From positions 186,001 to 250,000 of the forward strand of contig NIVC01000225.1 in assembly GCA_002269645.1 (NCBI GenBank): a stretch of DNA of 64,000 nt, given 5' to 3'. The stretch is from Macrostomum lignano (lineage: Eukaryota). The notes below the pieces were generated by a model. It ran no database searches, was not told where the DNA came from, and worked only from the letters and a program-made list of their open reading frames with translations. Shown here in pieces: positions 6,021 through 63,016 of this stretch; within the stretch, counting starts at the first letter, position 1, and each line of letters starts with the position of its first letter. The position numbers were made by a program, and so were the translations under genes.

Positions 6021-9000
6021 GATATCCGCTGCCACTCGGCCCCCAACTCGCCGCGGGTGTCCTACTGCACCTCCCCGGCCCTGGCAAGCTGCCGCTGCAG
6101 CAGACATGCGGCCCCGCTCAGCAGGATGCCGCCAGCATTCGCAGGCAGCGCAACGCCTCAATGTGCTCCGCCAGCACCCTGCAGATGCAGCAGCACCGTC
6201 GGATTCAGCAGCTGCAGCAGCAGCCGCCGCCGCCGCCTTACCCCGGCAGCTGCCGGTCCCTTCTAGTCGGCTGCGGCGCCGCGGCAGGCAGCCAGAGCTC
6301 GCTGCTAAGCTGCCAGTCGACAGTCTCGTACGCCTGCCGGGTGCAGGAGGTGCGCGAGATCAGCCTCGGCCGGCACAACGGCGAGCCGTTCGGCATGAAA
6401 GTCGAATTCGTTGGCGGGGTGAGCGCTCCGGTTTCCTCATCTGCCCCGCGCCCTACTCGAAATCCCCGCCTCTCTCGTGGATCGGGCATGGCTGGGCTGG
6501 GTTAGACCGGGACGGTTTCCCATCGCGTGAGGGGCAGCTCGAGAACATCGAGCCGAGGTGGCAAAGGGAGGCTGCAAGAGAGAGACAGCTGGGAATTGCT
6601 TCCCCATCATCTGCACGCGAGTCCATCTGGAGGAGCGAAACTCTACCCTCGCCTCACCTCGGCCCCCGCTCGACCCTCGCTCTAATCATCTGACGGACAG
6701 TCCGCCAGGGGGGAGGGCGGCAAGATTGCAGTTGGCAAAAATCAAGACCGAGTCCTGGCTGCGCCGATTGGCAAAGTGGAGCCGCCTCTGGGAGGCAATT
6801 AGAAGCTGAGCGAGGCAAGTGGGATGGACTTTCACACCCGGTGTTTGGTCGGGAAGGGACTGATTAGAAGTGCCAGCTGGACTGCACTACTGACTACTCT
6901 TAGCGGAATCATTAGAAACTCAAGCCAAAGCTATAACTGGTCTCACTTCTTGAGTTTAGTTAACCGCAAGGGCGTTGAGGGCTTCGGGCGCTGCCGCAAC
7001 TCAACACGACAGTCGATCAGCAGCGCTACTATGCTCGGCAAGCAGTTACGTATTTGCCCAGTGTACAATGCCCCTAGATTTCTTGTGCATTGGGTTAGCC
7101 TTCGAATTGGAGTGCTTCGCACGGCAAGCCTTAGGCTAATTTTTCCGTCCACGAACCTCAATAGTGTCTCAGGAGCCAGACGGTGCTCACTCCCACCGTG
7201 TCTCAGTGTCTCGGAACCTCATTTTAATCTCGCCCTTCAGTCGTTCTTCATCACCCACGTGGTCGCCGGATCCGTGGCTGCCTACGCTGGACTGAAGTCT
7301 GGCGATGAGATAGTGGCCATCAACGGCCGACAGCTGGAGGGCATGTCGACCAGGGATGTGCTGCAGATCATCAGGTGCGAGGTGTCCGTGCGGTTGGCCT
7401 ACCGGCCCAGGTGAGAGACTGTTGCGGTGCTGCTCAGTGCATTGCCGTCCCTTATTGACGCTCGTAGAGTAATTTTTCATCATCAATGATAGTCAAAAGT
7501 ATGCGTTTGCTATTAACATTCGTGTTCTGTACCAACATCCGTGTTCTGTATCAACATCCGTGTTCTTTACCAACATCCGTGTTCTGTATCAACATCCGTG
7601 TTCTGTACCAACATCCGTGTTCTGTATCAACATCCGTGTTCTGTACCAACATCCGTGTTCTGTATCAACATCCGTGTTCTTTACCAACATCCGTGTTCTG
7701 TATCAACATCCGTGTTCTTTACCAACATCCGTGTTCTGTATCAAAATCCATGTTCTGTATCAACATCCGTGTTCTGTATCAACATCCGTGTTCTGTACCA
7801 ACATCTGTGTTCTGTATCAAAATCCATGTTCTGTATCAACATCCGTGTTATTTATCAACATCCATGTTCTGTATCAACATCCGTGTTCTGTACCAACATC
7901 TGTGTTCTGTATCAAAATCCATGTTCTGTATCTACATCCGTGTTCTTTATCAACATCCGTGTTCTGTATCAAAATCCGTGTTCTGTACCAACATCCGTAT
8001 TCTGTATCCACATCCGTGTTCTTTATCAACATCCGTGTTCTTTATTAACATCCGTGTTCTTTATCAACATCCGTGTTCTGTATCAACATCCGTATTATGT
8101 ACCAACATCCGTATTCTGTACCAACATCCGTGTTCTGTACCAACATCCGTGTTCTGTATCAAAACCCATGTTCTGTACCAACATCCGTGTTCTGTATCCA
8201 CATCCGTGTTCTGTATCAACATCTATGTTCTGTATTAACATCTGTGTTCTTTATCAAAATCCATGTTCTGTATCAACATCCGTGTTCTTTATCAACATCC
8301 GTGTTCTGTATCAAAATCCATGTTCTGTATCAACATCCATGTTCTGTATCAACATCCGTGTTCTTTATCAACATCCGTGTTCTGTACCAACATCCGTGTT
8401 CTGTACCAACATCCGTGTTCTGTATCTACAACCGTGTTCTGTATCAACATCCGTGTTCTGTATCAACATCTGTGTTCTGTACCAACATCCGTGTTCTGTA
8501 TCAAAACCCATGTTCTGTACCAACATCCGTGTTCTGTATCCACATCCGTGTTCTGTACCAACATCCGTGTTCTGTATCCACATCCGTGTTCTGTATCAAC
8601 ATCTATGTTCTGTATTAACATCTGTGTTCTATATTAATGTCTGTGTTCTGTATCAACATCCATGTTCTGTATCAACATCCGTGTTCTTTATCAACATCCG
8701 TGTTATGTACCAACATCCGTGTTCTGTACCAACATCCGTGTTCTGTATCCACAACCGTGTTCTGTATCAACATTCGTGTTCTGTATCAACATCTGTGTTC
8801 TGTACCAACATCTATGTTCTGTATTAACATCTGTGTTCTGTATTAACATTCGTGTTCTATATTAATGTCCGTGTTACAAATAACATCACCCTTGATGCAC
8901 TAGAAAAACCGTGTTACAACAACAAAATCGGTGTTCAATCATACTGAACTTGCACCGACTGAGACACCGGGGCTCAATAAAGTTATCCCAAACCCCTGCA

Positions 9001-9650
9001 CCGACAGAGCGGTCGTGGCCCGGATACGCGAGGTCCGCTTAATGAAAGACAACGGAGTGGTCGGCGTGCGTCTGCAAAAGAAGCCCGATGTGCGTTCTGA
9101 AATTTCACAATTTCGCTTGCTTATTAGCGTCTGAATCTGAATTTGATTCTGATGTTTAACCAATCGGTACCATCTTCGCCCACAGGGACTTTACATTGAA
9201 TTCGTCAAGCTGGGCACCCCGGCGCATGCGGCAGGGTTGAAGGAGGGCGACCAGGTGTTGAAAGTGAACGGCCACTTTGTCACCGAGTGGTCTATGGAAG
9301 GCGCCATGGCGCTGCTGAAGTCGCTGACAGAGCAGCTGGTGCTGCTGGTGAGGGAGACGCTACCGCTCGTGGCGGCGCAGGCCCAGCCGGCCGGCCACCG
9401 CCGTCAGGCTGCGCTGCCGTCTGGCCACTACGTCAACCTGCGCTCGTCATCGCGGTCAACTCTAGCCTTGGCGCCCGCCTGCTCGCAGCGAACCTCGGAC
9501 GGCTACTCCGCGGCCAAAGAGGCGGAGGCGCTTTGCGGCCAGGCGGTCTACGCCGACAAGCAGCTCCCACCGGAATCTGCGCCAGAATCGGCGCCAGCAT
9601 CCGCGCCGGAATCCGCGCCAAAATCCGCGCCAGCTGTTGAGGCTTCCTGA
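6021..9650 (+). CDS. Tandem-PDZ scaffold protein, syntenin-like (5' end unresolved); exons ~6021-6418, 7241-7410, 9008-9089, 9186-9650
   Basis: GT-AG sites with matching phases (0,2,0) join PDZ-a (VREISLGRHNGEPFGMKVEFVGG/SFFITHVVAGSVAAYAGLKSGDEIVAING...) and PDZ-b (IREVRLMKDNGVVGVRLQKKPD/GLYIEFVKLGTPAHAAGLKEGDQVLKVNGHFVTEWS...), which resembles syntenin PDZ1. PPxY motif (QPPPPPYP) upstream; AATAAA at ~9944. Confidence 0.8.
7510..8870. repeat. 19-bp minisatellite AACATCCGTGTTCTGTATC (PDZ gene intron)
   Basis: Direct reading; source of spurious ORFs 7486-8865. Confidence 0.92.
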
Positions 9651-28771: not shown

Positions 28772-29761
28772 ATGCCAGAGGAAGCAGAAACCATGCCTAA
28801 ACCGCATATCTATGTGGAGAGAACACTGGCTGTGATTAAACCAGATGCTGTGCATCATGCTGACGAAATCGAGGACATTATTACTCAAAATGGATTCTCT
28901 GTTCTGCACAAACGGAAGGTGCAACTCACACCAGAACAAGCCAGTGAATTATATTCCGAGCACTTCGGAAAAATGTTTTTTCCCAGTTTGATTACGTATA
29001 TGAGCAGCGGGCCAATCGTTGCCTTGGTCATTGCCAAGGACAAAGCCATCAGCAGCTGGAGGGAGCTCATCGGTCCCACAAACGCTCTGATTGCGAAGCA
29101 GTCTCATCCGGATAGCCTTCGAGCCAAGTATGGCACAGATGACCAACAGAATGCTCTACACGGAAGCGACAGTTTCACGAGTGCGGAAAAGGAAATTCGC
29201 TTCTTCTTTCCAGACAGCATTGTGGAGCCGATTTCAATCGGCGATTCTGCCAAGTCCTACCTTGCCCGGCATGTCAACCCAACCGTGCTCAAGGGACTTA
29301 CTGAGCTGTGCAAGAAAAAGCCCAACGATCCAATTGTGTGGCTATCTAATTGGCTACTAGAAAACAACCCGAATAAACCAAAGGTTTGTAGTCATTTGAT
29401 ATGATGCGATGCTCTAATCTTTCTCATGTAAATACGACTTATACCAAGCCAATGTAAGTTAATTCTTAAAAAGCATTAAAATATCAAAAATTATAAAGCA
29501 GCAAGGTATTGAAATATCTGTGCAAAAAACTAATTATTTAAGGGATATAAATATAAATTATCAACTAAAAATTTTATTAAAAATCCCACCAAACTGAAAA
29601 TATTTCAAACCCAATTGATCAATTTTTAAGTATCAAATAGTTATCCAAATCAAACTGAAAGTGAGCAGATTTGCTTAGGACAAAATGCAAGAAACATTTA
29701 CCATATTTAAACTCATTTTCAGGTTGGTGGCAACTATTCTGTTGAAGAACCTCAGGCATAA
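28772..29761 (+). CDS. NME5: Nucleoside diphosphate kinase homolog 5 (nm23-H5, radial spoke RSPH23) with C-terminal Dpy-30 motif; exons 28772-29383, 29723-29761
   Basis: ERTLAVIKPDAV, MSSGPIVALV, WRELIGP, SLRAKYGTD, NALHGSDS NDK motifs followed by Dpy-30 motif YLARHVNPTVLKGLTELCKKKPNDPIVWLSNWLLENNPNKP. Donor AAG|GTTTGT at 29384, acceptor TTTCAG at 29722, stop 29759-29761, AATAAA ~29857. Confidence 0.93.
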
Positions 29762-35984: not shown

Positions 35985-38627
<2,643 letters not shown>

Positions 38628-38645
<18 letters not shown>

Positions 38646-38928
38646 CAACTTAGTAACTGACTGAGAAAACTAAATAATAACTTTTGACTTGGGAAAGATT
38701 AGCCAGAATACGAAACCGGCCTTTCAACGCTTGGCGTCAAGCAAAAAGGCGCTTAACTCGAAATTCAGGTGCTGCCCAGTCCGAATTCGAATGTCTGTGG
38801 CCAGGGCTGCAGCAGTGAGAAGGGCCGCCGCTAATCCCAGTCCATCAAGTCTCCGCGGCGTTAATTCTCCATTAGTGGCGAGTCGCACCTGTCTTTGGGG
38901 CGCCCGTCAGCCATGTCAGCCTCGGCAG
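38628..38928. mobile_element. Microsatellite-linked dispersed repeat, copy 1 (may extend to ~39255)
   Basis: About 300 bp nearly identical to 62078-62378; both abut (AACT)n on the left. Confidence 0.75.
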
Positions 38929-42380: not shown

Positions 42381-42626
42381 GCCCTGAGCTCACGCGCGTC
42401 AGTTCAGCCATTCCCCATCAAAGCCCTCCTACGTCTATTTGCGAGCCAAAAGAGAAAAACATCGATAAATAAATTCCGCAAAGGCAAGCGAGATTTCTGC
42501 TCTTCTTTACTGAAGTGTAAATACTAAAGTGTTTACGGAAACGTGTCCGGGATGATGTCCGGCCCCGAGCTGCCCAGGCCGGGCCCGTGGGCGGCTTGGC
42601 AGCGGCCCGTTGGCCCAGCTGGGTGG

Positions 42627-42661
42627 CCAATGGGAGGCGGCGGGGCTGCTCGGGGATAAAA
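42627..42661 (+). promoter_or_regulatory. Putative ILP-B core promoter (CCAAT 42627, GATAAAA 42655)
   Basis: CCAAT followed by a GC-rich stretch and a TATA-like box about 157 nt upstream of the ATG. Confidence 0.4.
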
Positions 42662-42811
42662 TTGGCAGCCTTCGGGACCGCCCCGGCCGATGCAGGCGGC
42701 CTGGCTGGCTTCCCGCAACACTCACCGACTGACCTTCCCTCTCCACAAGCTCTGCTCAAACTCTGCTCAAGCTCTCCTCACTCCGGCCAATCCAGCAAGA
42801 AGCTGCAGACG

Positions 42812-43515
42812 ATGCGCAGCTCGGCACTGACGCTCTCGGCTCTGGTCCTCCTGGCTGTGGCGCTGTGCGGCAGCGGCTCGCAGCAGATTCGAACCCGGTC
42901 CGGCTCTGGGCTGGCTGAGGTAGGTCTTGAGCTGTTAAAGTTGCATTCAGCGCTATGCTATTCTAAACCAGCACGTTTTCGGCCCCAACGCAGCCTAAAC
43001 TGCCGAGGCTGTGCGGCATCAGGCTGATCAGGAAGCTGTACGAGGTGTGCAAGGACCGCGGCGGCGTCTACAACGGTGGTCTCATGCGCCGCGTCAGACG
43101 CGACACCTCTAGCAGCTCAGGTGAGTTGGCTACCTCAGCCTCCGCCATCAGTGCTCACCTCAGCCTCCATCATCAGTGCTCACCCCAGCCTCCATCATCA
43201 GTGCTCACCCCAGCCTCCATCATCAGTGCTCACCCCAGCCTCCATCATCAGTGCTCACCCCAGCCTCCATCATCAGTGCTCACCCCAGCCTCCATCATCA
43301 GTGCTCACTCAGCCTCCATCATCAGTGCTCACCCCAGCCTCCATCATCAGTGCTCACCCCAGCCACTGCATCAATTTTCAGTCGGCCAGCTCCTGAAGCG
43401 CACCATAGGGCATTCCAAGCTCAAATGCCTGATTCCAAAGGACGACATTGTGCACCACTGCTGCACCTGCGGGCGGTGCACCTTGTCCTACATGCAGCTG
43501 TACTGCAACTACTGA
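42812..43515 (+). CDS. ILP: Insulin-like peptide B, 122-aa prepropeptide; exons 42812-42919, 42994-43120, 43382-43515
   Basis: Signal peptide MRSSALTLSALVLLAVALCGSGS; B chain CGIRLIRKLYEVCKDRGGVY; RRVRR and KR processing sites; A chain LKCLIPKDDIVHHCCTCGRCTLSYMQLYCNY; AATAAA at 43600. Confidence 0.92.
43135..43365. repeat. 26-bp minisatellite in ILP-B intron 2
   Basis: CAGCCTCCATCATCAGTGCTCACCCC units. Confidence 0.9.
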
Positions 43516-48455: not shown

Positions 48456-48531
48456 TCTTACCGACTTTCCAAGGAATCTCATCTAGACAGCTGAAAATTG
48501 AATCCCACTTTGAGCCGTGAGCACGGCAATG

Positions 48532-48600
48532 CCAATTTTGTCGGAGCGATGGGATTGGCTGCGCCAGGGCTTCTCTTATCCCGGATGCCAGAGGATAAAT
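48532..48600 (+). promoter_or_regulatory. Putative ILP-C core promoter (CCAAT 48532, ATTGG 48554, GATAAAT 48594)
   Basis: CCAAT boxes and a TATA-like box about 133 nt upstream of the ATG. Confidence 0.4.
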
Positions 48601-48726
48601 AAGCTGCAGACCGGTGACCAGCTGCCCGCTTCTGCATCCGCCCGACAGCGCAGTCTCTCCAGCCGGCCCGACCGAACAGGCAAATTTGACTCAAATCTGA
48701 ACTCGACGACTCGCCAGCACCGCGTC

Positions 48727-50475
48727 ATGTCGGCATCAGCTCAGCTGATTCTGCGGTTTGCCCTGCCGCTGCTGCTCCTGGCATTCGCCGCTGGGCCTCA
48801 GCTGGCCGGCTCCGCAACCGTTCCTCCCGATGTGAGGCTGGCCCTGGCAACTGCAAAATGTCATGGCAACTATCCCACAGAAGCCAAATCTTTCTAGCCA
48901 CTAAATATCCTAGTAACTAAATGCCATAGCAACTAAATATCATAGCAAGTAAATCCCATAGCAAATAAACCCCATAGCAACTAACCCCCATAGCAACTAA
49001 CCCCCATAGCAACTAAACACCATAGCAACTAAACACCATAGCAACTAAACCCAATAGCAACTAAACCCCATAGGAAGTAAATCCCATAGCAAATAAACCC
49101 CATAGCAACTAACCCCCATAGCAACTAAACACCATAGCAACTAAACACCATAGCAACTAAACACCATAGCAACTAAACACCATAGCAACTAAACACCATA
49201 GCAACTAAACACCATAGCAACTAAATCCCATAGCAAGTAAATCTCATAGCAAGTAAATCCATAGCAACTAAATCCCATGGCAACTAAATCCCATAGCAAG
49301 TAAATCTCATAGCAAGTAAATCCCATAGCAACTAAATCCCATGGCAACTAAATCCTATAGCAACTAAATCCCATAGCAACTAAATCCCATGGCAACTAAA
49401 TACCTTGACAATCAAATCTATTCGCGGAGTGTGTGAGCAAAAAGCTCGAACTGGTGCCCATGGCCTCTCCATCATTGCAGCAGATCAGCATCCAGCAGTG
49501 CAGCGATAACCTGGTCAAAATTGTCCACTTCGTCTGCCGCAACAGGGGCGGAATCTACGATCAACGGTCCGGCTACCTGGAGCAGGCGGCTCGCTTCCTG
49601 AAGAGGGGCAAGCAGCTGGAGACCGCAGGTGAGGCCACGAGGTCACCTCGTCATCACGTGTGAGGTCAATGGCATTTGAGCTGGAGATCCGTGTGCTGCG
49701 GCTTGACGCTCATGCCTTAAAAACGTGTTGATTTGATGCTTGTCGAGAGAAAATCAATGTAGTTTATCCATAAGTCCATGGTATTTGCTGTGAGGTCCAT
49801 GGTATTTGCCGTGAGGTCCATGGTATTTGCCGTGAGGTCCATGGTATTTGCTGTGAGGTCCATGGTATTTGCTGTGAGGTCCATGTTATTTGCTGTGAGG
49901 TCCATGGTATTTGCTGTGAGGTCCATGGTATTTGCTGTAAGGTCCATGGTATTTGCTGTGAGGTCCATGTTATTTGCTGTGAGGTCCATGGTATTTGCTG
50001 TAAGGTCCATGGTATTTGCTGTGAGGTCCATGTTATTTGCTGTGAGGTCCATGGTATTTGCTGTAAGGTCCATGGTATTTGCTGTGAGGTGCATGGTATT
50101 TGCTGTGAGGTCCATGGTATTTGCTGTAAGGTCCATGGTATTTGCTGTGAGGTGCATGGTATTTGCTGTAAGGTCCATGGTATTTGCCACGAGATGCACC
50201 CCTAACAGAAGGCCAAGTGAAGATCCTTGAACTGAAGTTGAGCTTACCAGAAAAAGCAGTTCAAGCACTCGCACAGCAGAGCCGCAACCCCAGCCCTTCA
50301 CCCCCTGCGCCCCGCAGCCGCCGTAGCCAAGCGCCAGCGCAGCCTGTCCTCGCTGGCCTGCATGATCGAAGACGCTGAGAACATCGTGAGCAGCTGCTGC
50401 TGCCGCGAGTGCTCGCTGTCCTACCTGTACGGCTTCTGCGCCTACCCCGAGCCAGTTGGGAGAGTGACCAACTGA
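48727..50475 (+). CDS. ILP: Insulin-like peptide C, 136-aa prepropeptide; exons 48727-48831, 49481-49628, 50318-50475
   Basis: Signal peptide MSASAQLILRFALPLLLLAFAAGPQLAGSA; B chain CSDNLVKIVHFVCRNRGGIY; two KR sites; A chain LACMIEDAENIVSSCCCRECSLSYLYGFCAYPEPVGRVTN; same intron phases (0,1) as paralogs; AATAAA at 50918. Confidence 0.9.
48895..49400. repeat. ~20-bp CATAGCAACTAAA-based repeat in ILP-C intron 1
   Basis: Direct reading. Confidence 0.88.
49775..50185. repeat. 21-bp minisatellite CCATGGTATTTGCTGTGAGGT in ILP-C intron 2
   Basis: Direct reading. Confidence 0.92.
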
Positions 50476-53362: not shown

Positions 53363-54174
53363 ATTGCCCTGGTAGATCAACCAGCAATTGCTTAGGTTCA
53401 GTCACCAGCCAGTGAACAGGTGACTCGCGCAGACGGTCTGTCAATTTTATTTGATTTATTAAATTTACTGTGCGCAGACGCGTGGATGATGAGGGAGGCT
53501 GAGAATTAGGCAGAGGTGCTCAGGCATGAGCTGGATTGCGCAACAGGCGATTGGCTCGGCTTTAACGATCGCATTTCATACTGAAACATTATTATAAATA
53601 ATAAGTTTATATATGCTACTAAAAGCTGTCTTGCACAATAAATTATGTTAATAACAGCGGCACGCGGGGCACACAGCCACAGGGAACTCGGGAATGTACT
53701 TTTGAGCCAGACTGGCGGCACAGTGTATAATGAATAAAGTATAATGAACGTTAATAAACTCGGGCTGGAATGTTGACAGCATAATGTACTGTAAAACTTA
53801 TCATAATAGCAACAGTGGTGGCGTCTCAGTGCCCATGGAAATTTCGTAACGCACGCGTCCATAGCAACCATTTCTCAATAAATCTAAATAGAAGCGGGGC
53901 GGACCCGATGCGGTTGGTAGAAAAAGTGCGCGTATTAAAACAAAAAACAGTTAAAAACCAAAATGTTCGAATCATTCAGGGCGAGAGTTTATGTACAAGT
54001 ATGCAGAGCCAACCGCATCCCGGCATGCTGGGTGGACAAGCAATTGCTTTACTCCTCAATAATCCTCTCAGACAACAGACTAATAACTAACAATAAAATT
54101 AGACTTGTATAAAATAACCCTACAGTTACACAAGACGTTTGCACAGCTTCCAGTCTACATAACAGAATCTTCTT

Positions 54175-54490
54175 CAGTAGCATACTACTTCCGGTTCAGT
54201 AGTGTACTACTTCCGGTTCAACAGTGTACTACTTCCGGTTTAGTAGTGTGCTACTTCCGGCTCAGTAGTGTACTACTTCCGGTTCAATAGTGTACTACTT
54301 CCGGTTTAGTAGTGTGCTACTTCCGGTTCAGTAGTGTACTACTTCCGGTCCAGTATTATACTACTTTCGGTTCAATAAGTATACTACTTCCGGTTCAGTA
54401 GTATACTACCTCTAATTCACTAGTCCAATGCTTCCGTTTCGGTAGCACGTGCTACTTCCGGCTTATTGTTTACAGCACTTCCGGCAGAAT
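54175..54490. repeat. ~22-bp repeat AGTAGTGTACTACTTCCGGTTC (3' of the ATPase)
   Basis: Direct reading; contains ACTTCCGG. Confidence 0.8.
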
Positions 54491-54616
54491 TAGCATACTA
54501 CTCTATATCCAACACAAATACATTGTTTTCCAATTGAACAGTTAAAAATTCACTATAATTCACAGACAGACGCAGCTAAAATGATTAGCAGAGAAGAGTT
54601 CACAGCAGGAAGTGTC

Positions 54617-57600
54617 TTAGAAGCTTTCCAGAAAATCCAGCCAGTTGTTCTTCACCCCGGATGGCCTCAGCCGGAGCACCAGTTTCCTGATCTCGTCGTA
54701 CATGAGGATGAGGAAGCCGAAGGGCATTGCGGGCAGCCACCAGGTGAAGCGGAGGGGCTGCATCTGCAGGGCCTGGTTCAGGTAGGGCACGTAGACCATC
54801 ACGATGGCCAGGCCGGTCTCAAACAGCAGCGAGAAGGACAGGAAATGATTCCACATGCCCTGCTGCAGCAGCGAGTTGCTGCGGGTCTTGCAGGCCAGCA
54901 GGTTGGCCCACTGCATCACCACAATGCTGGCAAAGAAAGCCGAGTGAGCTGTGTACTCCAGGCGCTTGCGCTGGTAATAGGACTGCGGGCAGAGCGCAGG
55001 GGCTTTGTTTGAGCTTGGATTCTTTTTTTAATACTTCCGGAAAGGTGATAAATTTGGTTACAATTTGGTTACAGTTCGCATAGCTGCAGATTCCTACCTT
55101 TGGTCCAATGCTTACCCTAAATCTACTCCCGGTTCTTTGTAGTTTCCTGCTTCCACTTTGATGTAGTTTCCTACTTCCGGCCCCATGTAGTTTCCTACTT
55201 CCGGTTCCATGTAGTTTCCTACTTCCGGTACCATGTAGTTTCCTACTTCCGGCCCCATGTAGTTTCCTACTTCCGGTTCCATGTAGTTTCCTACTTCCGG
55301 TTCCATGTAGTTTCCTGCTTCCGGTCCCATGTAGTTTCCTAATTCGGGTTCTATGTAGTTTCCTGCTTCCGGTTTCATATAGTTTCCTACTTCCGCTTCC
55401 ATATAGTTTCCTACTTCCGGTCCCATGTAGTTTCCTACTTCCGGCCCCATGTAGTTTCCTACTTCCGGTCCCATGTAGTTTCCTACTTCCGGTCCCATGT
55501 AGTTTCCTACTTCCGGTCTCATGTAGTTTCCTACTTCCGGTCCCATATAGTTTCCTACTTCCGGTCTCATGTAGTTTCCTACTTCCGGTCTCATGTAGTT
55601 TCCTACTTCCGGTCCCATAAAGTTTCCTACTTCCGGTCCCATAAAGTTTCCTACTTCCGGTCCCATATAGTTTCTTACTTCCGGTCCCATAAAGTTTCCT
55701 ACTTCCGGTCCCATATAGTTTCCTACTTCCGGTTCTATATAGTTTCCTATTTCCGGTTGCATATAGTTTCCTACTTCCGGTTCTATATAATTTCCTATTT
55801 CCGGTTGCATATAGTTTTGTGCTTCCGGTTCTGTATAGATGTAGGCGTATATTTTCCAACTTACGGCTCTTAGTTCCCCACTTTCAGCATAAAGTTCTAT
55901 CAAAACTGCCTTGTTTCTATTGAGCCTATTGAAAATCCTTAGCCACTTCACACGTACTTAGGGGGTTCAGCAGGTCACTTCCGGTTAGCCTACTTCACAG
56001 CCGCACTCACCCACTCTTGGCCGTAGCTGTCCTCCAGGTCCACGATGCCCTCGCTGTCCCACACCCGGCGGATGCCGAACAGCCGGCGCGGCCAGAAGCC
56101 GTTCTCGGACAGCACGACGAAGTAGGTGAAGAAGCCGCCGGCCGCCTGCAAGATGCCGATGCGGGCGAAGGCCGAGCTGAGTAGCCGCTCGCTCACTAGG
56201 CGGTCCCGGCGCGGATTCCTGGGATCGCGGCGCATGATGTCGCTTTCAGCCTCCTCGTAGGCCAGGGAGACGGCCGGGGCCAGGTCGGTGCCGAGGTCGA
56301 TGCACAGGATGGTGATGGTGCCCAGGGGCAGCGGGATGCTGACCACCAGGAAGGACAGGAAGCAGATGACCTCGGGCATGTTGGAGGTCAGCGTGTAGGC
56401 GATGGACTTCTTGAGGTTGTCGAACAGGATGCGGCCCTCCTCGATGCCCGTGACGATGGAGGCAAAGTTGTCGTCCGCCAGCACCATGTCGGCGACCTGC
56501 GGCGGCGGTTGGTAAAAAATGGCTGAAGCTCAGATCCCCAATCCCCTAACAGGCTCAGATCCCCTATCCCCTGACAGGCTCAGATCCCCAATCCCCTGAC
56601 AGGCTCAGATCCCCAATCACCTGACATGCTCAGATTCCCAATCCCCTGACATGCTCAGATCCCAAATCCCCTGACAGGCTCAGATCCCCAATCTTCTGAC
56701 AGGCTCAGATCCCCAATCCCCTGACAGGCTCAGATCCCCAATCCCCTGACAGGCTCAGATCCCAAATCCCCTGACAGGCTCAGATCCCCAATCTTCTGAC
56801 AGGCTCAGATCCCCAATCCCCTGACAGGCTCAGATCCCCAATCCCCTGACAGGCTCAGATCCCAAATCCCCTGACAGGCTCAGATCCCCAATCTTCTGAC
56901 AGGCTCAGATCCCCAATCCCCTGACAGGCTCAGATCCCCAATCCCCTGACAGGCTCAGATCCCAAATCTTCTGACAGGCTCAAATCCCCAATCTTCTGAC
57001 AGGCTCAGATCCCCAATCCCCTGACAGGCTCAGATTCCCAATCCCCTGACAGGCTCAGATCCCCTATCCCCTGACAGGCTCAGATCCCAAATCCCCTGAC
57101 AGGCTCAGATCCCAAATCCAATGACAGTCTCAGATTCCCAATCCCCTGACATGCTCTGATCCCCAATCCCCTGACAGGCTCAGATCCCAAATCCCCTGAC
57201 AGGCTCAGATCCCCAATCTTCTGACAGGCTCAAATCCCCAATCCCCTGACAGGCTCAGATCCCCAATCCCCTGACAGGCTTAGATCCCAAATCCCCTGAC
57301 AGGCTCAGATCCCCAATCCCCTGACAGGCTCAAATCCCCAATCCCCTGACAGGCTCAGATTCCCAATCTCCTGACAGGCTCAGATCCCCAATCCCCTGAC
57401 AGGCTCAGATTCCCAATCCCTGACATGCTCAGATCCCCAATCCCCTGACATGCTCAGATTCCCAATCCCCTGACATGCTCAGATCCCAAATCCCCTGACA
57501 GGCTCAGATCCCCAATCCCCTGACAGGCTCAGATCCCAAATCCAATGACAGTCTCAGATCCCCAATCCCCTGACAGGCTCAGATCTCCAATCCCCTGACA

Positions 57601-60600
57601 GGCTAAGATGCCCAATCCCCTGACAGGCTCAGATCCCAAATCCAATGACAGTCTCAGATCCCCAATCCCCTGACAGGCTCAAATCCCCAATCCCCTGACA
57701 GGCTCAGATTCCCAATCTTCTGACAGGCTCAGATCCCCAATCCCCTGACAGGCTCAGATCCCCAATCTCCTGTCAGGCGCAGATCCCCAATCCCCCGACA
57801 GGCTCAGATCCCCAATCTCCTGTCAGGCGCAGATCCCCAATCCCCCGACAGGCTCAGATCCCAAATCCCCTGACAGGCTCACCTGCTTGCTGATGTCGCT
57901 GCCCGCCAGGCCCATGGCGATGCCGATGTCCGCCTGCCTGAGCGCCGGCGAGTCGCTCACGCCGTCGCCAGTGACCGCCACCACGTGACCCAGGCGCTGG
58001 CAGCTCTCCACAATGACCAGCTTCTGCTGCGGGGTGGTCCTGGCGAACACGAGCTCCCGGTGAGTGCGCACCAGCTCGTCCAGCTGGCCGCTGGTCATCT
58101 CGGCCAGGTCGGAGCCGTGAACCACGCAGGCGTCGGCCTCCCGCGGGTCCACGTGGGACGGGTCGACGCCGCGCTCCAGTGCGATGTCCTCCGCCGTCTT
58201 GCTGCGGCTGCTAATGATGTCCACGTGGCGGGCGATGGCCTTCGCCGTGATTGGGTGGTCGCCCGTCACCATGATGACCTGGACAGGTGGCGGTGAGATT
58301 CGGATGGGCAGTGGCTGAGATTCGGGTGAGACAGTGGCTGAGATTCGGGTGAGCAGTGGCTGAGATTCGGGTGAGCAATGGCTGAGATTCGGGTGGGCAG
58401 TGGCTGAGATTTGGGTGAGATAGTGGCTGAGATTCGGGTGAGCAGTGACTGAGATTTTGGTGAGCAGTGGCTGAGATTCGGGTGAGCAGTGGCTGAGATT
58501 CGGGTGAGCAGTGGCTGAAATTCGCGAGATTCGGGAAAAGCTAGCATGTCACGCTAGCAACTGCCTACTTATAAGTAGCAAAACACGAGCACGAACAGAA
58601 AAGTTCATCCCTGCGCTCTCCCAGCTCCTCACCTTGATGCCTGCGGAGCGGCACTTCTGCACGGCGTCCGGCACGGAAGCCCTGGGCGGGTCAATCATGG
58701 AGATGAGGCCGAGAAACCGGAGCCCCATGAGCGGGAAGTTCACCTCCTCGGCGTTGAACTCGTATCGCTCGTCGAATTCGTCGGCGGACAGGCGGAGGTC
58801 GCAGAAGCCGAGGACCCGCTCGCCCTGGCCGCCCAGCTCGTTGTAGGCGGCGAGAAAGGAGCGGCGCCACTGGTCGGAGGTCTGCACCTCGCGGCCGTCA
58901 ACCAGCAGGTGCGAGCATCTGTCAAAGATGATCTCCGGAGCGCCCTTCATCACCAGTAGGAAGTTGGAGCCGCGCTCCCGCATCACGTGCACGGAGGCCT
59001 GGGGCGAGGCGGAGGGGTGAAGAGGCACTTCCGGTGAATATTCTTGCTTAGAGTGAAAAGTCAATACTAAGTCACTTCCAATCCAATATTCTAGTCACTT
59101 CCGGTTTCGATGGAAAAGGCAATCCAATAGTCTAGTCACTTTGGTTTAGAGGGAAAAGGCAATCCAATAGTCTAGTCACTTCCGGTTTAGAGGGAAAAGG
59201 CAATCCAATAGTCTAGTCACTTTGGTTTAGAGGGAAAAGGCAATCCAATAGTCTAGTCACTTCCGGTTTAGAGGGAAAAGGCAATCCAATAGTCTAGTCA
59301 CTTCCGGTTTAGAGGGAAAAGGCAATCCAATAGTCTAGTCACTTCCGGTTTAGAGGGAAAAGGCAATCCAATAGTCTAGTCACTTCCGGTTTAGATGGAA
59401 AAGGCAATCCAATAGTCTAGTCACTTCCGGTTTAGAGGGAAAAGGCAATCCAATAGTCTAGTCACTTTGGTTTAGAGGGAAAAGGCAATCCAATAGTCTA
59501 GTCACTTCCGGTTTAGATGGAAAAGGCAATCCAATAGTCTAGTCACTTCCGGTTTAGATGGAAAAGGCAATCCAATAGTCTAGTCACTTCCGGTTTAGAT
59601 GGAAAAGGCAATCCAATAGTCTAGTCACTTCCGGTTTAGATGGAAAAGGCAATCCAATAGTCTAGTCACTTCCGGTTTAGATGGAAAAGGCAATCCAATA
59701 GTCTAGTCACTTCCGGTTTAGATGGAAAAGGCAATCCAATAGTCTAGTCACTTCCGGTTTAGAGGGAAAAGGCAATCCAATAGTCTAGTCACTTCCGGTT
59801 TAGAGGGAAAAGGCAATCCAATAGTCTAGTCACTTCCGGTTTAGATGGAAAAGGCAATCCAATAGTCTAGTCACTTCTCGCCTCACCTGGAATTTGTTGG
59901 CGCTGCTGAACGGAACCTCGCAAATCTTGGGATGTTGGCGCCGGAACTCCGGCACGCCGCCCACGCACCACTCCATGTACTTGAGCAGCGCGGACTCGGA
60001 AGCGTCGCCAATGCAGTCCCGCTGCAGAATCGGCTTTTCCTCTTCGCCGGCTTTGAACTCCGCCCGGCTGCACAGCATGGCGCACCGGCTGAGGGCTACC
60101 CAGTCAGGGGACTGCGGAGGCGCCGGGGCCGCGCCTTCGCCCATCTGGACCTCCGCGATGCGGCCGCTCTGCCAGGTGTGCGTCACCGTCATCCGGTTCA
60201 TTGTCAGCGTGCCTGGCGGGGGCGGCATGTGGTTTTTTAGTTGAACTCAAGTCTGTTGCTAGGCAGTTGCTATGTGGTTTTTTAGGTGAACTCAAGTCTG
60301 TTACTAGGCAGTTGCTATGTGGTTTTTTAGGTGAACTCAAGTCTGTTGCTAGGCATTTACTATGTGGTTTTTAGGTGAACTCAAGTCTGTTGCTAGGCGG
60401 TTGCTACGCGGTTTTACACCCTCAATAGTCTAGCAATCCCGTTCGCCATCGCTCCCACGCCAGACTCACCGGTCTTGTCCGAGCAGATGACGCTGGTGGC
60501 GCCCAGAGTTTCCACAGCCTCCAGGTTGCGGACGAAGCAGTTCTTCGAGGCCATGCGCTGGGCGGTGAGGGTCAGGCAGACGGTGACGGTGGCCAGGAGG

Positions 60601-62010
60601 CCCTCCGGGATGTTGGCCACGATGATGCCGATGAGGAAGATGATGGAGTCCAGCCAGTCGTACTGCATAGCGAAGGAGGCGATGAAGAAGGCGGCGCCCA
60701 TCAGCACGGCGATGACGGTGACGATGTTGATGAAGCGCTCGATTTCCCGGCCGATGGGGGTCTGGCGGGCGTCCAGCCCGGAGGCCAAGTTGGCGATGCG
60801 CCCGATGAGGGTGGCGTCACCAGTGCGGATCACAATGCCGATGCAGTTGCCTGGTGGGGGTGGTGAAATTCCAGCTCAGGCTCATGTGCTCAATCGCAGC
60901 GGGTCTGAAGACAGTGGGATAAAATCCCCATCTCAGGTGCCTCTCTCCCTGAAGCCAGTGGGATAAAATCCCCATCTCAGGTGCACACTCCCTGAAGCCA
61001 GTGGAATAAAATCCCCATCTCAGGTGCACACTCCCTGAAGCCAGTGGGATAAAATTCCCATCTCAGGTGCTCACTCCCTGAAGCCAGTGGGATAAAATTC
61101 CCATCTCAGGTGCTCACTCCCTGAAGCCAGTGGGATAAAATTCCCATCTCAGGTGCTCACTCCCTGAAGCCAGTGGAATAAAATTCCCATCTCAGGTGCT
61201 CACTCCCTGAAGCCAGTGGGATGAAATCCCCATTTCAGATGCTCACTCCCAGCGGGTTTGACGCCACAAAGGATAAAATCCCCATTCTTGGGCACTTACC
61301 CTCAACAGCGTAGGTAGAGAAGAACGCCAGGTTCTCTGTCTCCAGCGGGTTCTCGCTAGTGTACTCCCTGGAGCGCACCTGGGGATCGGACTCGCCAGTC
61401 AGACAGGAGTTGTCCACCTTGAAGCGCTGCGCATTGATGATGCGGACATCGGCTGGCACCTGGTCACCGGCGTTGATCTCGACGATGTCACCGCGGACGA
61501 GTTTGGAAGTGAGGACGCGGCGCTTCTCGCCGTCGCGCAGCACGAGCGCCTGCTGGGGCAGGCTCTCCTTGAACTTGTCGATGATCTGGGCGGACTGGTG
61601 CTCCTGCGGCGGACGGCGGAGTGACAGATTTGTGACTCTGGGCGCGTCGCACATTCTTTATTTAACACAACTAACTGACTGACTGACTGACTGACTGACT
61701 GACTGACTGACTGACTGACTGACTGACTGACTGACTGACTGACTGACTGACTGACTGACTGACTGACTGACTGACTGACTGACTGACTGACTGACTGACT
61801 GACTGACTGACTGACTGACTGACTGACTAACTGACTGACTGACTGACTGACTGACTGACTGACTGACTGACTGACTGACTGACTGACTGACTGACTGACT
61901 GACTGACTGACTGACTGACTGACTGACTGACTGACTGACTAACTAACTAACTAACTAACTGACTGAATAACTAAGTAACTAACTAACTAATTTAACTAAC
62001 TAAATAACTG

Positions 62011-62079
<69 letters not shown>

Positions 62080-62390
62080 ATATCTAACTATCTAACAACT
62101 TAGTAACTGACTGAGAAAACTAAATAATAACTTTTGACTTGGGAAAGATTAGCCAGAATTCGAAACCGGCCTTTCAACACTTGGCGTCAAGCAAAAAGGC
62201 GCTTAACTCGAAATTCAGGTGCTGCCCAGTCCGAATTCGAATGTCTGTGGCCAGGGCTGCAGCAGTGAGAAGGGCCGCCGCTAATCCCAGTCCATCAAGT
62301 CTCCGCGGCGTTAATTCTCCATTAGTGGCGAGTCGCACCTGTCTTTGGGGCGCCCGTCAGCCATGTCAGCCTCGGCAGACTGACTGACTG

Positions 62391-62458
<68 letters not shown>

Positions 62459-62459
62459 G

Positions 62460-62551
<92 letters not shown>

Positions 62552-63016
62552 AAGGTGAAACTAAATTTAGGGACTCACCTGGTAGTAGGAGAAGCCACCG
62601 GTCACAGCGACCACCACCACCAGTACGATGCCGATGTACAGGTTGTCTGCCGGCGGGCTTTCGTAGGCGCCGAACTCCACGCCGTAGGCGATGAAGCAAA
62701 GGATGGCGCCAATGAGCAGCAGCAGGGAGAAGCCGCTGAAGACGGTCTTGGCGATTTGAACCCACTGCGGCGCGGCGGACGGCGGCGTCAGCTCGTTCGG
62801 GCCCTCCTGGGCGAGGCGCGCGTCGGCGTCCTCCTGCGGCAGGCCGTGCGACTCCGAGGACTGCATGTAGTCCATGAGCGCCGCAAGGTCCATGCGGTGC
62901 TCGTCCATCTCGAACTCCTGGCGGAGGTCATCTGTGCGGTGCGGCCGGCCAGTGCGAGAGCCCTTCTCGCCGCGAAGGGTTTCGGCGCGGACTGCCTGCC
63001 GGAAGCTGTTGTCTCT
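54617..63016 (-). CDS. ATP1A: Na+/K+-ATPase alpha-family (P2C) pump, divergent; exons 63016-62579, 61603-61300, 60850-60470, 60212-59887, 58998-58633, 58278-57883, 56496-56011, 54982-54617; short first exon not located
   Basis: Eight exons join in phase to 1020 aa: [49 protein letters not shown] (phospho-Asp), [56 protein letters not shown]. Confidence 0.95.
55125..55830. repeat. 24-bp minisatellite CATGTAGTTTCCTACTTCCGGTCC (last ATPase intron)
   Basis: Direct reading; contains ACTTCCGG. Confidence 0.92.
56525..57882. repeat. 25-bp minisatellite GGCTCAGATCCCCAATCCCCTGACA filling an ATPase intron
   Basis: Direct reading; the last unit merges with the splice donor. Confidence 0.92.
58290..58525. 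repeat. 22-23-bp minisatellite GAGCAGTGGCTGAGATTCGGGT
   Basis: Direct reading. Confidence 0.88.
59070..59875. repeat. 41-bp minisatellite AATCCAATAGTCTAGTCACTTCCGGTTTAGAGGGAAAAGGC
   Basis: Direct reading; contains CCAAT and ACTTCCGG. Confidence 0.92.
60228..60415. repeat. ~45-bp minisatellite (GAACTCAAGTCTGTTGCTAGGCA...) in an ATPase intron
   Basis: Four copies read directly. Confidence 0.85.
60905..61290. repeat. 43-bp minisatellite CACTCCCTGAAGCCAGTGGGATAAAATTCCCATCTCAGGTGCT
   Basis: Direct reading. Confidence 0.88.
61669..62550. repeat. (GACT)n and (AACT)n tracts flanking the dispersed element
   Basis: Direct reading. Confidence 0.92.
62078..62378. mobile_element. Microsatellite-linked dispersed repeat, copy 2 (intronic in the ATPase)
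   Basis: Only a few substitutions versus 38628-38928; embedded between (GACT/AACT)n tracts. Confidence 0.75.

Follow-up and report, generated by a model that had tools for sequence, protein, structure and literature searches.

Can a Na+/K+ pump that has lost the carboxylate of its third Na+ site and the two tyrosines at its C-terminus still be a working enzyme kept by selection and, if so, which kind of pump would it be? This question is raised by the gene Mlig017217 of the flatworm Macrostomum lignano, most of which lies in the stretch of contig NIVC01000225.1 analysed here (positions 186,001 to 250,000; 64,000 nucleotides (nt), hereafter the window, to which all coordinates refer), and whose terminal coding exon occupies 54617-54982 on the minus strand, TAA stop included. 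The 3:2 stoichiometry of the Na+/K+ pump, its site III and its C-terminal tail have been studied almost entirely through engineered or disease mutants, all of them harmful natively. Mlig017217 is a naturally selected carrier of the Asp-to-Asn change of the rapid-onset dystonia-parkinsonism (RDP)/alternating hemiplegia of childhood (AHC) type, together with a rebuilt tail and in an otherwise intact protein. The gene is intact and selectively maintained, and we lean, without great confidence, towards reading its product as a pump that is active but whose third Na+ site is weakened.

Residues retained and replaced

Mlig017217 is a class 2C P-type ATPase (P2C), a paralog of the Na+/K+-ATPase alpha-subunit. 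Its precomputed Pfam domains follow the order Cation_ATPase_N, E1-E2_ATPase, Cation_ATPase, Hydrolase and Cation_ATPase_C, and a phmmer search against the PDB places Na,K-ATPase alpha1 first (1344 bits over residues 1-972), with the H,K-ATPases at ~1150-1174 and SERCA at ~370. The catalytic motifs are present, namely D369 in CSDKTGTLT (DKTGT), TGES, KGAPE, DPPR, MVTGDHP, D710 and D714, and K501 is also kept. The statement of the first-pass annotation that the residues of sites I and II are intact holds for all their ligands (N324, E327, S775, N776, E779, D804 and D808). In addition, the alignment to pig alpha1 shows that the site III neighbours Y771, Q923 and E954 are kept, as are the partners of the tail (K766, R933, D995 and R998), and the SYGQ motif of the loop between the transmembrane helices M7 and M8 (L7-8), which binds the beta-subunit, is found in EDSYGQEW.

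Regarding ion selectivity, all four residues of the signature by which Na,K-ATPases are told apart from H,K-ATPases (S775, P778, W924 and C930), which are those converting H,K-ATPase of the non-gastric type (ngHKA) into a Na/K pump (PMC9463140), are present. The H,K-ATPase states Lys at S775, Ile at W924 and Arg at C930 were sought and none was found, the residues being Ser, Trp and Cys instead. A 2:2 stoichiometry or the handling of H+/NH4+, as suggested in the first-pass annotation, is conjectural, and an H,K-type signature with Lys in M5 is missing. The lysines at N324 and N776 typical of Artemia alpha2KK were also sought, and both positions hold Asn. By these residues, the protein is built like a Na,K-ATPase, and neither like an H,K-ATPase nor like a pump of the Artemia alpha2KK type.

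Meanwhile, the ligand set of site III is incomplete, with Y771 and Q923 present and D926 replaced by Asn. The codon AAC at 54902-54904 (minus strand, as all features of this gene) encodes Asn890, numbered from MDEH, and this residue stands opposite pig Asp926, the site III carboxylate, in the HMMER alignment to 3wgu_A, whose index is the mature pig numbering; both the translation and the alignment bear out the substitution that had been proposed there. Two samples of canonical Na,K-ATPases have Asp at this position without exception (115/115 and 119/119; 234/234 together). Within the same M8 segment (54872-54937), Q923, W924, C930 and R933 are kept, and R934 is Ser. Adenosine-to-inosine editing of AAC or AAT back to an Asp codon was considered and found no support: for the exon surrounding the codon, the predicted fold does not surpass that of shuffled sequences (z = -0.17), and no inverted repeat involves the codon.

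The C-terminal tail is altered as well. Two tyrosines terminate ~97% of the canonical pumps of the same two samples, and the canonical M. lignano pump ends in ...YDEIRKTLLRRLPPGNWLERETYY; Mlig017217 departs from this tail by an insertion of three codons, VKN (54647-54655), and by DFLESF in place of ERETYY. Its final residues are WLDFLESF (54620-54643, followed by the TAA stop at 54617-54619) where other pumps have W(L/V)E(R/K)ETYY, so that the end differs from the canonical ...PPGNWLERETYY and (K/R)ETYY is missing. The tail had been described as unchanged in length from the Trp, and this is correct for the eight residues between the Trp and the end, which are eight in both; however, the insertion sits before NW, and the C-terminus is therefore longer than that of the canonical M. 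lignano pump. The terminal residue remains aromatic (Phe). A simple frameshift of the canonical tail was also considered as the source of this sequence and rejected, as the other frames hold, by inspection, nothing like ETYY. The M9 sequence LLFET had been counted as a further part of the remodelling, by comparison with LFEET, but FFET (E953 = Phe, with E954 kept) is what the canonical pumps of flatworms, molluscs and brachiopods have here. This is the ordinary state in lophotrochozoans, and the argument from M9 falls away.

These changes have to be seen against the divergence of the whole protein. When positions at least 98% identical among 115 canonical pumps are taken as near-invariant (515 positions), Mlig017217 deviates at 80 of them (15.5%); among other pumps the median is 1, and the two canonical pumps of M. 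lignano have 1-4. The replaced positions are evenly distributed, at 9-27% per segment and with no preference for the catalytic core, and the only enriched segment is the C-terminal tail (5/6, p<0.001). Two of the replacements, not noted in the first-pass annotation, are rarer than D926N. The first, N713S (codon AGC, Ser677, at 57955-57957), lies in the hinge motif TGDGVNDSPA, which is consequently not fully intact, with D710 and D714 present and Ser at N713; Ser is found in 0/379 relatives (233 canonical and 146 diverse P2C pumps), whose canonical members have Asn throughout (115/115 and 118/118) and whose diverse P2C members have it in 141/146. The second, P782C in M5 (codon TGC, Cys746, at 56362-56364), turns PEITPF into PEVICF at a position where Pro stands in all canonical pumps sampled (115/115 and 115/115) and in 131/142 of the diverse representatives. 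Invariant positions are also altered by Q376M and R506I. Considering the residues with a known function, Mlig017217 seems distinctive in that they are changed essentially only at site III, in the tail, at N713 and at P782.

Since any single invariant position had a chance of ~0.15 of being changed, D926N alone is no evidence of targeted remodelling, and with 80 such positions changed, the argument from two coordinated changes, as made in the first-pass annotation, cannot stand on Mlig017217 alone. The part of it that does stand comes from the enrichment in the tail and from the wider family. When 1.84 billion representative proteins were scanned in full with HMMER, 150 diverse P2C-like pumps were returned, and among the 126 that could be scored at position 926 there were 44 with Asp, 37 with Asn and 16 with His, the rest having other residues. 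Complete C-termini were available for 115 of these pumps, and the YY ending follows Asp in 25/40, Asn in 1/35 and other residues in 7/40. This association of Asp926 with YY (25/40 vs 8/75, Fisher 1e-8, uncorrected for phylogeny) speaks for a functional connection of the aspartate in M8 with the two terminal tyrosines. Moreover, the commonest ending of the Asn-bearing pumps is a single terminal aromatic residue (19/35), as in Mlig017217. Judged by the canonical pumps, with Asp926 in 234/234 and YY in ~97%, Asn926 and the altered tail of Mlig017217 are far from chance.

The named Asn-bearing pumps belong mostly to protists (Acrasis, Percolomonas, Andalucia, Chilomastix and Paratrimastix). Asp926 is also absent from three divergent alpha-like paralogs of animals, which are those of the springtail Orchesella cincta (ODN02567; P0167) and the sponge Ephydatia muelleri (Em0006g213a; P0190), both with Asn, and of the spider Stegodyphus dumicola (XP_035207125; P0406), with Ser. 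These three also lack site I/II ligands or catalytic residues, examples being TGNS for TGES, the loss of D804 and Gln or Lys in place of E779. No characterisation of the Orchesella, Stegodyphus and Ephydatia paralogs was found in the literature searched.

Gene structure, selection and origin

The product of Mlig017217 has 1024 residues, of which 1020 are encoded inside the window (54617-63016, minus strand) from the acceptor at 63016 onwards; the first exon, of four codons (MDDG), lies ~130 bases past the window end, near 64129. The model was assembled from open frames and splice sites and has eight coding exons in the window, with GT-AG at all seven internal junctions, no internal stop and a GC content at third codon positions (GC3) of 0.91. 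All donors read GTRAG and all acceptors CAG after a C-rich tract, including the strong acceptor of the terminal exon (ctctgcccgcag/TCC). In the order of translation, the exons encode the N-terminus and M1-M2 (62579-63016, with MDEH at 62908), the A domain with TGES (61300-61603), M3-M4 with IVANIPEGL at 60597-60623 and the CSDKTG phosphorylation site (60470-60850), the start of the N domain with TLTMN, where Q376 is Met (59887-60212, the codon at 60199-60201), the rest of the N domain with KGAPE and DPPR (58633-58998), the P domain (57883-58278), M5, M6, M7 and L7-8 with SYGQ (56011-56496, with the M5 motif at 56359-56397 and CIDLGTD at 56284-56304) and, finally, M8, M9, M10 and the C-terminal tail in the exon that ends the gene.

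The translation of the window is 100% identical to BOX15_Mlig017217g1 and g3 (GenBank PAA72344, PAA72810 and PAA87570), and the UniProt entries A0A1I8FXZ2 and A0A1I8HJQ4, which are models from an independent earlier assembly, carry the same sequence. As transcripts assembled from RNA-seq, together with TransDecoder, underlie the GenBank annotation of the assembly (PMC5730564), the model of Mlig017217 is transcript-based.

In M. lignano the locus is present three times, as L001, L002 and L003, the last being the one in the window of NIVC01000225.1. Among their 3063-nt coding sequences there are 30 differing sites, and all 30 are synonymous. The pairwise synonymous divergence (dS) is 0.023-0.036, close beside intron flanks that diverge by 2.0-2.5%, and the nonsynonymous divergence (dN) is 0 across 2321 nonsynonymous sites, where the neutral rate predicts ~50-80 such differences for each pair; the probability that 30 of 30 differences are synonymous under neutrality is ~0.24^30. 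The claim that the 1020-residue frame is intact, and not in random decay, is thus upheld. Asn926 is encoded by AAC in L001 and L003 and by AAT in L002, and Ser713 is the same in all three copies. The use of two codons for the same Asn, together with differences that are synonymous throughout, excludes both sequencing error, which had been named as a possible source of AAC, and pseudogene decay. Mlig017217 is consequently an intact and selectively maintained gene that passed through a burst of fast change and is now frozen under strong purifying selection.

As to its origin, Mlig017217 is 67.5% and 66% identical to the canonical M. lignano pumps, ~64% to those of other flatworms and ~63% to those of molluscs. 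A neighbour-joining tree does not place its long branch, which is attracted to the Orchesella paralog (52% bootstrap) and groups with the canonical M. lignano pumps in 10%. Lineage signature sites (3:1 and 4:1) point weakly towards an origin in the flatworm/Macrostomum lineage. Three intron positions are common to the canonical M. lignano gene and two are present only in the paralog, and these two argue against a very recent duplication.

Proposed function and alternative explanations

Fast change has replaced ~15% of the otherwise invariant residues, and strong purifying selection now acts on all three copies. In the resulting protein, the sole carboxylate of the Na+-exclusive site III is neutralised by the change of Asp926 to Asn, and the tail that stabilises this site is rebuilt, with three more residues and DFLESF for ERETYY. 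By analogy with mammalian and Xenopus mutants, the alpha-beta pump would still cycle and use sites I and II to take up external K+ in exchange for cytoplasmic Na+ (or H+); the occupancy of site III would be greatly weakened or lost, giving a much lower apparent affinity for Na+, and possibly fewer charges would be moved per cycle. Mutagenesis of N713 alters phosphoenzyme kinetics, and N713S in the GDGVND hinge probably shifts the kinetics of phosphorylation or dephosphorylation further.

The mutants that carry these changes singly have been described. In D923N and D928N, the affinity for Na+ falls more than 100-fold and the turnover is 11%, and activation by K+ persists (PMC13607240); free-energy calculations for D926N indicate that Na+ selectivity is lost at sites II and III (PMC5026471), and the two terminal tyrosines stabilise the occluded E1P(3Na) state (PMC2894553). 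With these parallels there is a credible case that Mlig017217 probably has altered Na+ handling. It may move fewer ions per cycle or only have a high K0.5 for Na+. A stronger version, in which site III is switched off and sites I and II and the Na,K-specific scaffold remain intact, is also conceivable but stays doubtful: such a pump would be electroneutral, with two cations out and two K+ in, or it would be an 'overflow' Na+ pump of very low affinity.

Several points weigh against an active pump in which the third Na+ site is weakened. Compensating residues, unseen among the 80 changed invariant positions, could restore near-normal binding of Na+; N713S and P782C might cripple catalysis instead; and the tail may still dock through the terminal Phe and the kept K766 and R933. 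At a distance of 165 nt past the stop there is also a mini-exon with weak signals, in frame and with YY at its end. With three queries, namely the full-length protein, its C-terminal 130 residues and its C-terminal 415 residues, 5.8 billion protein clusters were searched for an ortholog or fragment more than 68% identical and from outside M. lignano, and none was found; the 130-residue query returned 11 candidates only and is unreliable as a negative. Regarding expression, nothing was found under the gene ID in a full-text search or in the M. lignano supplements (PMC5816591, PMC7336406 and PMC12896417), and a literature search by topic for M. lignano pumps also found nothing.

Among the other explanations, the one that survives best, unlikely as we hold it to be, is an ordinary 3Na+:2K+ isoform, in which the carbonyl oxygen of Asn926 would still ligate Na+ and other substitutions would compensate, so that the affinity for Na+ would be at most modestly lower, as between mammalian isoforms. 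Such an isoform would agree with the retention of all other ligands of sites I-III and of the Na,K-specific residues, with the terminal aromatic residue and the kept K766, R933, D995 and R998, and with the strong selection on the protein. In addition, second-site rescue of D923N is documented, and single changes restore its Na+ affinity almost fully (PMC13607240). However, Asp926 is replaced in 0/234 canonical pumps, and in Mlig017217 the E1P(3Na) state would be hit by two independent destabilisers, D926N and the loss of YY.

One of the documented rescue changes, E314D (PMC13607240), has a counterpart in Mlig017217 in E312D, and this was examined as a possible compensation specific to D926N. 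Most invertebrate pumps (96/115) have Asp at this position, and the change is therefore not a specific compensation; G319 and R880 are unchanged.

A second alternative, improbable in our view, is that the protein works independently of pumping, or is catalytically impaired, with a structural, junctional or signalling role. The hinge change N713S, unique among the 379 relatives, would fit such a role, as would P782C, Q376M and R506I at invariant positions and the existence of divergent alpha-like paralogs without Asp926 or YY in Orchesella, Stegodyphus and Ephydatia. Those paralogs, however, have also lost site I/II or catalytic residues, whereas Mlig017217 keeps D369, TGES, K501, D710, D714 and all ligands of sites I and II. 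The replaced invariant residues are evenly spread, and not concentrated in the core, and there is no nonsynonymous difference over the whole length of the three copies, ion sites included.

The tyrosines could also have been lost on paper only, through an artefact in the annotation of the 3' end, and we consider this highly improbable. The mRNA would then be spliced from a donor GGG/GTGAAG, placed after RPSG with the last exon base at 54656, to a mini-exon behind an AAGTAG acceptor (54395-54451, minus strand), ending in ...HVLPKRKHWTSELEVVYY before a stop and retaining YY. The donor, which the first-pass annotation had named, is indeed in frame with the mini-exon, which ends in VVYY and a stop; the mini-exon is identical in all three copies, and the 330 nt past the stop show only 1-2 differences between the copies, compared to 2-2.5% in the intron flanks. 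The splice signals, however, are weak, as the donor lacks the G at +5 found in all seven real donors and the acceptor is TAG after a purine-rich tract, the real ones being CAG after C-rich tracts. The YY-stop is supplied by a 22-nt minisatellite, in its first unit, and ~0.6 such triplets would be expected by chance in the 14.7 kilobases (kb) scanned, in which one was found. Moreover, the spacing of the tail would be unlike NWLERETYY, no annotated model uses the mini-exon, LESF being the end of all five independent gene models. Even if it were used, Asn926 and Ser713 would be unaffected.

The same 330 nt (54287-54616, minus strand, with their counterparts in L001 and L002) include the in-frame mini-exon, and their 1-2 differences compare with 2.3-3.6% at synonymous sites; they could be a constrained 3' untranslated region or a local gene-conversion tract.

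Lastly, a decaying duplicate, or an Asn codon produced by faulty sequencing or assembly, has next to no chance despite the many invariant residues replaced, and is refuted by the three-copy comparison and the earlier assembly, given the intact frame, the consensus splice sites, the 30/30 synonymous differences, the Asn from two codons and the same sequence in that independent assembly.

Neighbouring features and comparison with known pumps

In the introns and the 3' flank of the pump gene (54173-62551), a different minisatellite or microsatellite fills nearly every intron. The repeat periods are 22, 24, 25 (54 copies), 22/89, 41, 45 and 43 nt, accompanied by (ACTA)n and by 102 copies of (ACTG)n; the array lengths vary between the three gene copies, and several units have a CTTCCGG core in common. 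Downstream of the pump gene and convergent to it, two insulin-like peptide genes lie in tandem on the plus strand (42587-43515 and 48517-50475), and one insulin-like open reading frame (ORF) ends in ...HHCCTCGRCTLSYMQLYCNY. The counterpart genes in L001-L003 have precomputed Pfam Insulin matches (L002) or weak matches, and a Pfam scan of the single ORF pieces of the insulin-like genes gave no match.

Further away, an uninterrupted NME5-like ORF of 210 residues (28772-29404, plus strand) contains a nucleoside diphosphate kinase domain (E = 3.5e-44) and a Dpy-30 motif (E = 1.2e-15), and lies inside an AT-rich island with a GC content of 0.35, compared to ~0.5 elsewhere in the window. An (ACTA)n microsatellite of 2.7 kb and ~670 copies extends over 35985-38662 and accounts for the GC content of 0.25 and the GC skew of -0.90 of that region. 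A PDZ-domain gene is found at 6824-9650 on the plus strand, as exon-like ORFs (E = 1e-9 to 7e-4) with a minisatellite-filled intron between them.

If site III of Mlig017217 were indeed off, this gene would be the natural counterpart, reached by way of site III, of the engineered conversions of H,K-ATPase (HKA) to Na,K-ATPase (NKA) and of Artemia alpha2KK, and a pump serving an intertidal flatworm under large swings of salinity. If it were found to behave normally, Asp926 and the two tyrosines would be dispensable in the right sequence context. Mlig017217 offers a background in which to ask which accompanying changes keep such a pump viable, and whether the stoichiometry or the affinity alone is altered. 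M. lignano is tractable by RNA interference, in situ hybridisation and transgenesis, which makes the physiological role directly approachable.

Compared to the canonical Na+/K+-ATPase alpha-subunit, as seen in pig ATP1A1 (PDB 3WGU/3B8E) and in M. lignano Mlig021528, Mlig017217 has the same Pfam architecture, ~1000 residues and 63-67% identity, and shares DKTGT, TGES, KGAPE, DPPR, MVTGDHP, SYGQ, the ligands of sites I and II, Y771, Q923, E954, K766 and R933. It differs by D926N, the tail with three more residues and LESF for ETYY, N713S, P782C, R934S, Q376M and two extra introns. The site III substitution is identical to those of ATP1A3-D923N, rat alpha1-D928N and pig D926N; those, however, are single deleterious changes in a canonical pump, whereas the Asn of Mlig017217 is fixed and selected in a background that diverged with it. 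Likewise, both terminal tyrosines are lost in the delta-YY and delta-KESYY/KETYY mutants (PMC2894553), as in Mlig017217, but these truncated pumps are shortened, whereas the Mlig017217 tail has gained three residues and keeps a terminal Phe with its free carboxylate.

The H,K-ATPases ATP4A and ATP12A are P2C pumps too, electroneutral and making no Na+ use of site III. In M8 they retain Gln and Asp, their end is YY, and they have S775K, W924I and C930R, the non-gastric form also P778A (PMC9463140); in contrast, Mlig017217 has the Na,K states at S775, P778, W924 and C930 and scores lower against HKA structures. The divergent animal paralogs and the protist pumps with Asn in M8 resemble Mlig017217 in a residue other than Asp at 926 and in an end other than YY, usually with one terminal aromatic residue. 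The protist pumps, however, are only 35-48% identical to it, and the animal paralogs without Asp926 have lost site I/II or catalytic residues, whereas Mlig017217 keeps all but site III, the tail and N713. Artemia franciscana alpha2KK (PDB 8K1L), whose structure is among the PDB matches of Mlig017217, is a natural and selected paralog of reduced stoichiometry with an altered ion-binding region, from an animal of variable salinity (PMC10756188). Its changes, N324K and N776K, lie inside sites I and II, whereas Mlig017217 keeps N324 and N776 and is changed at site III.

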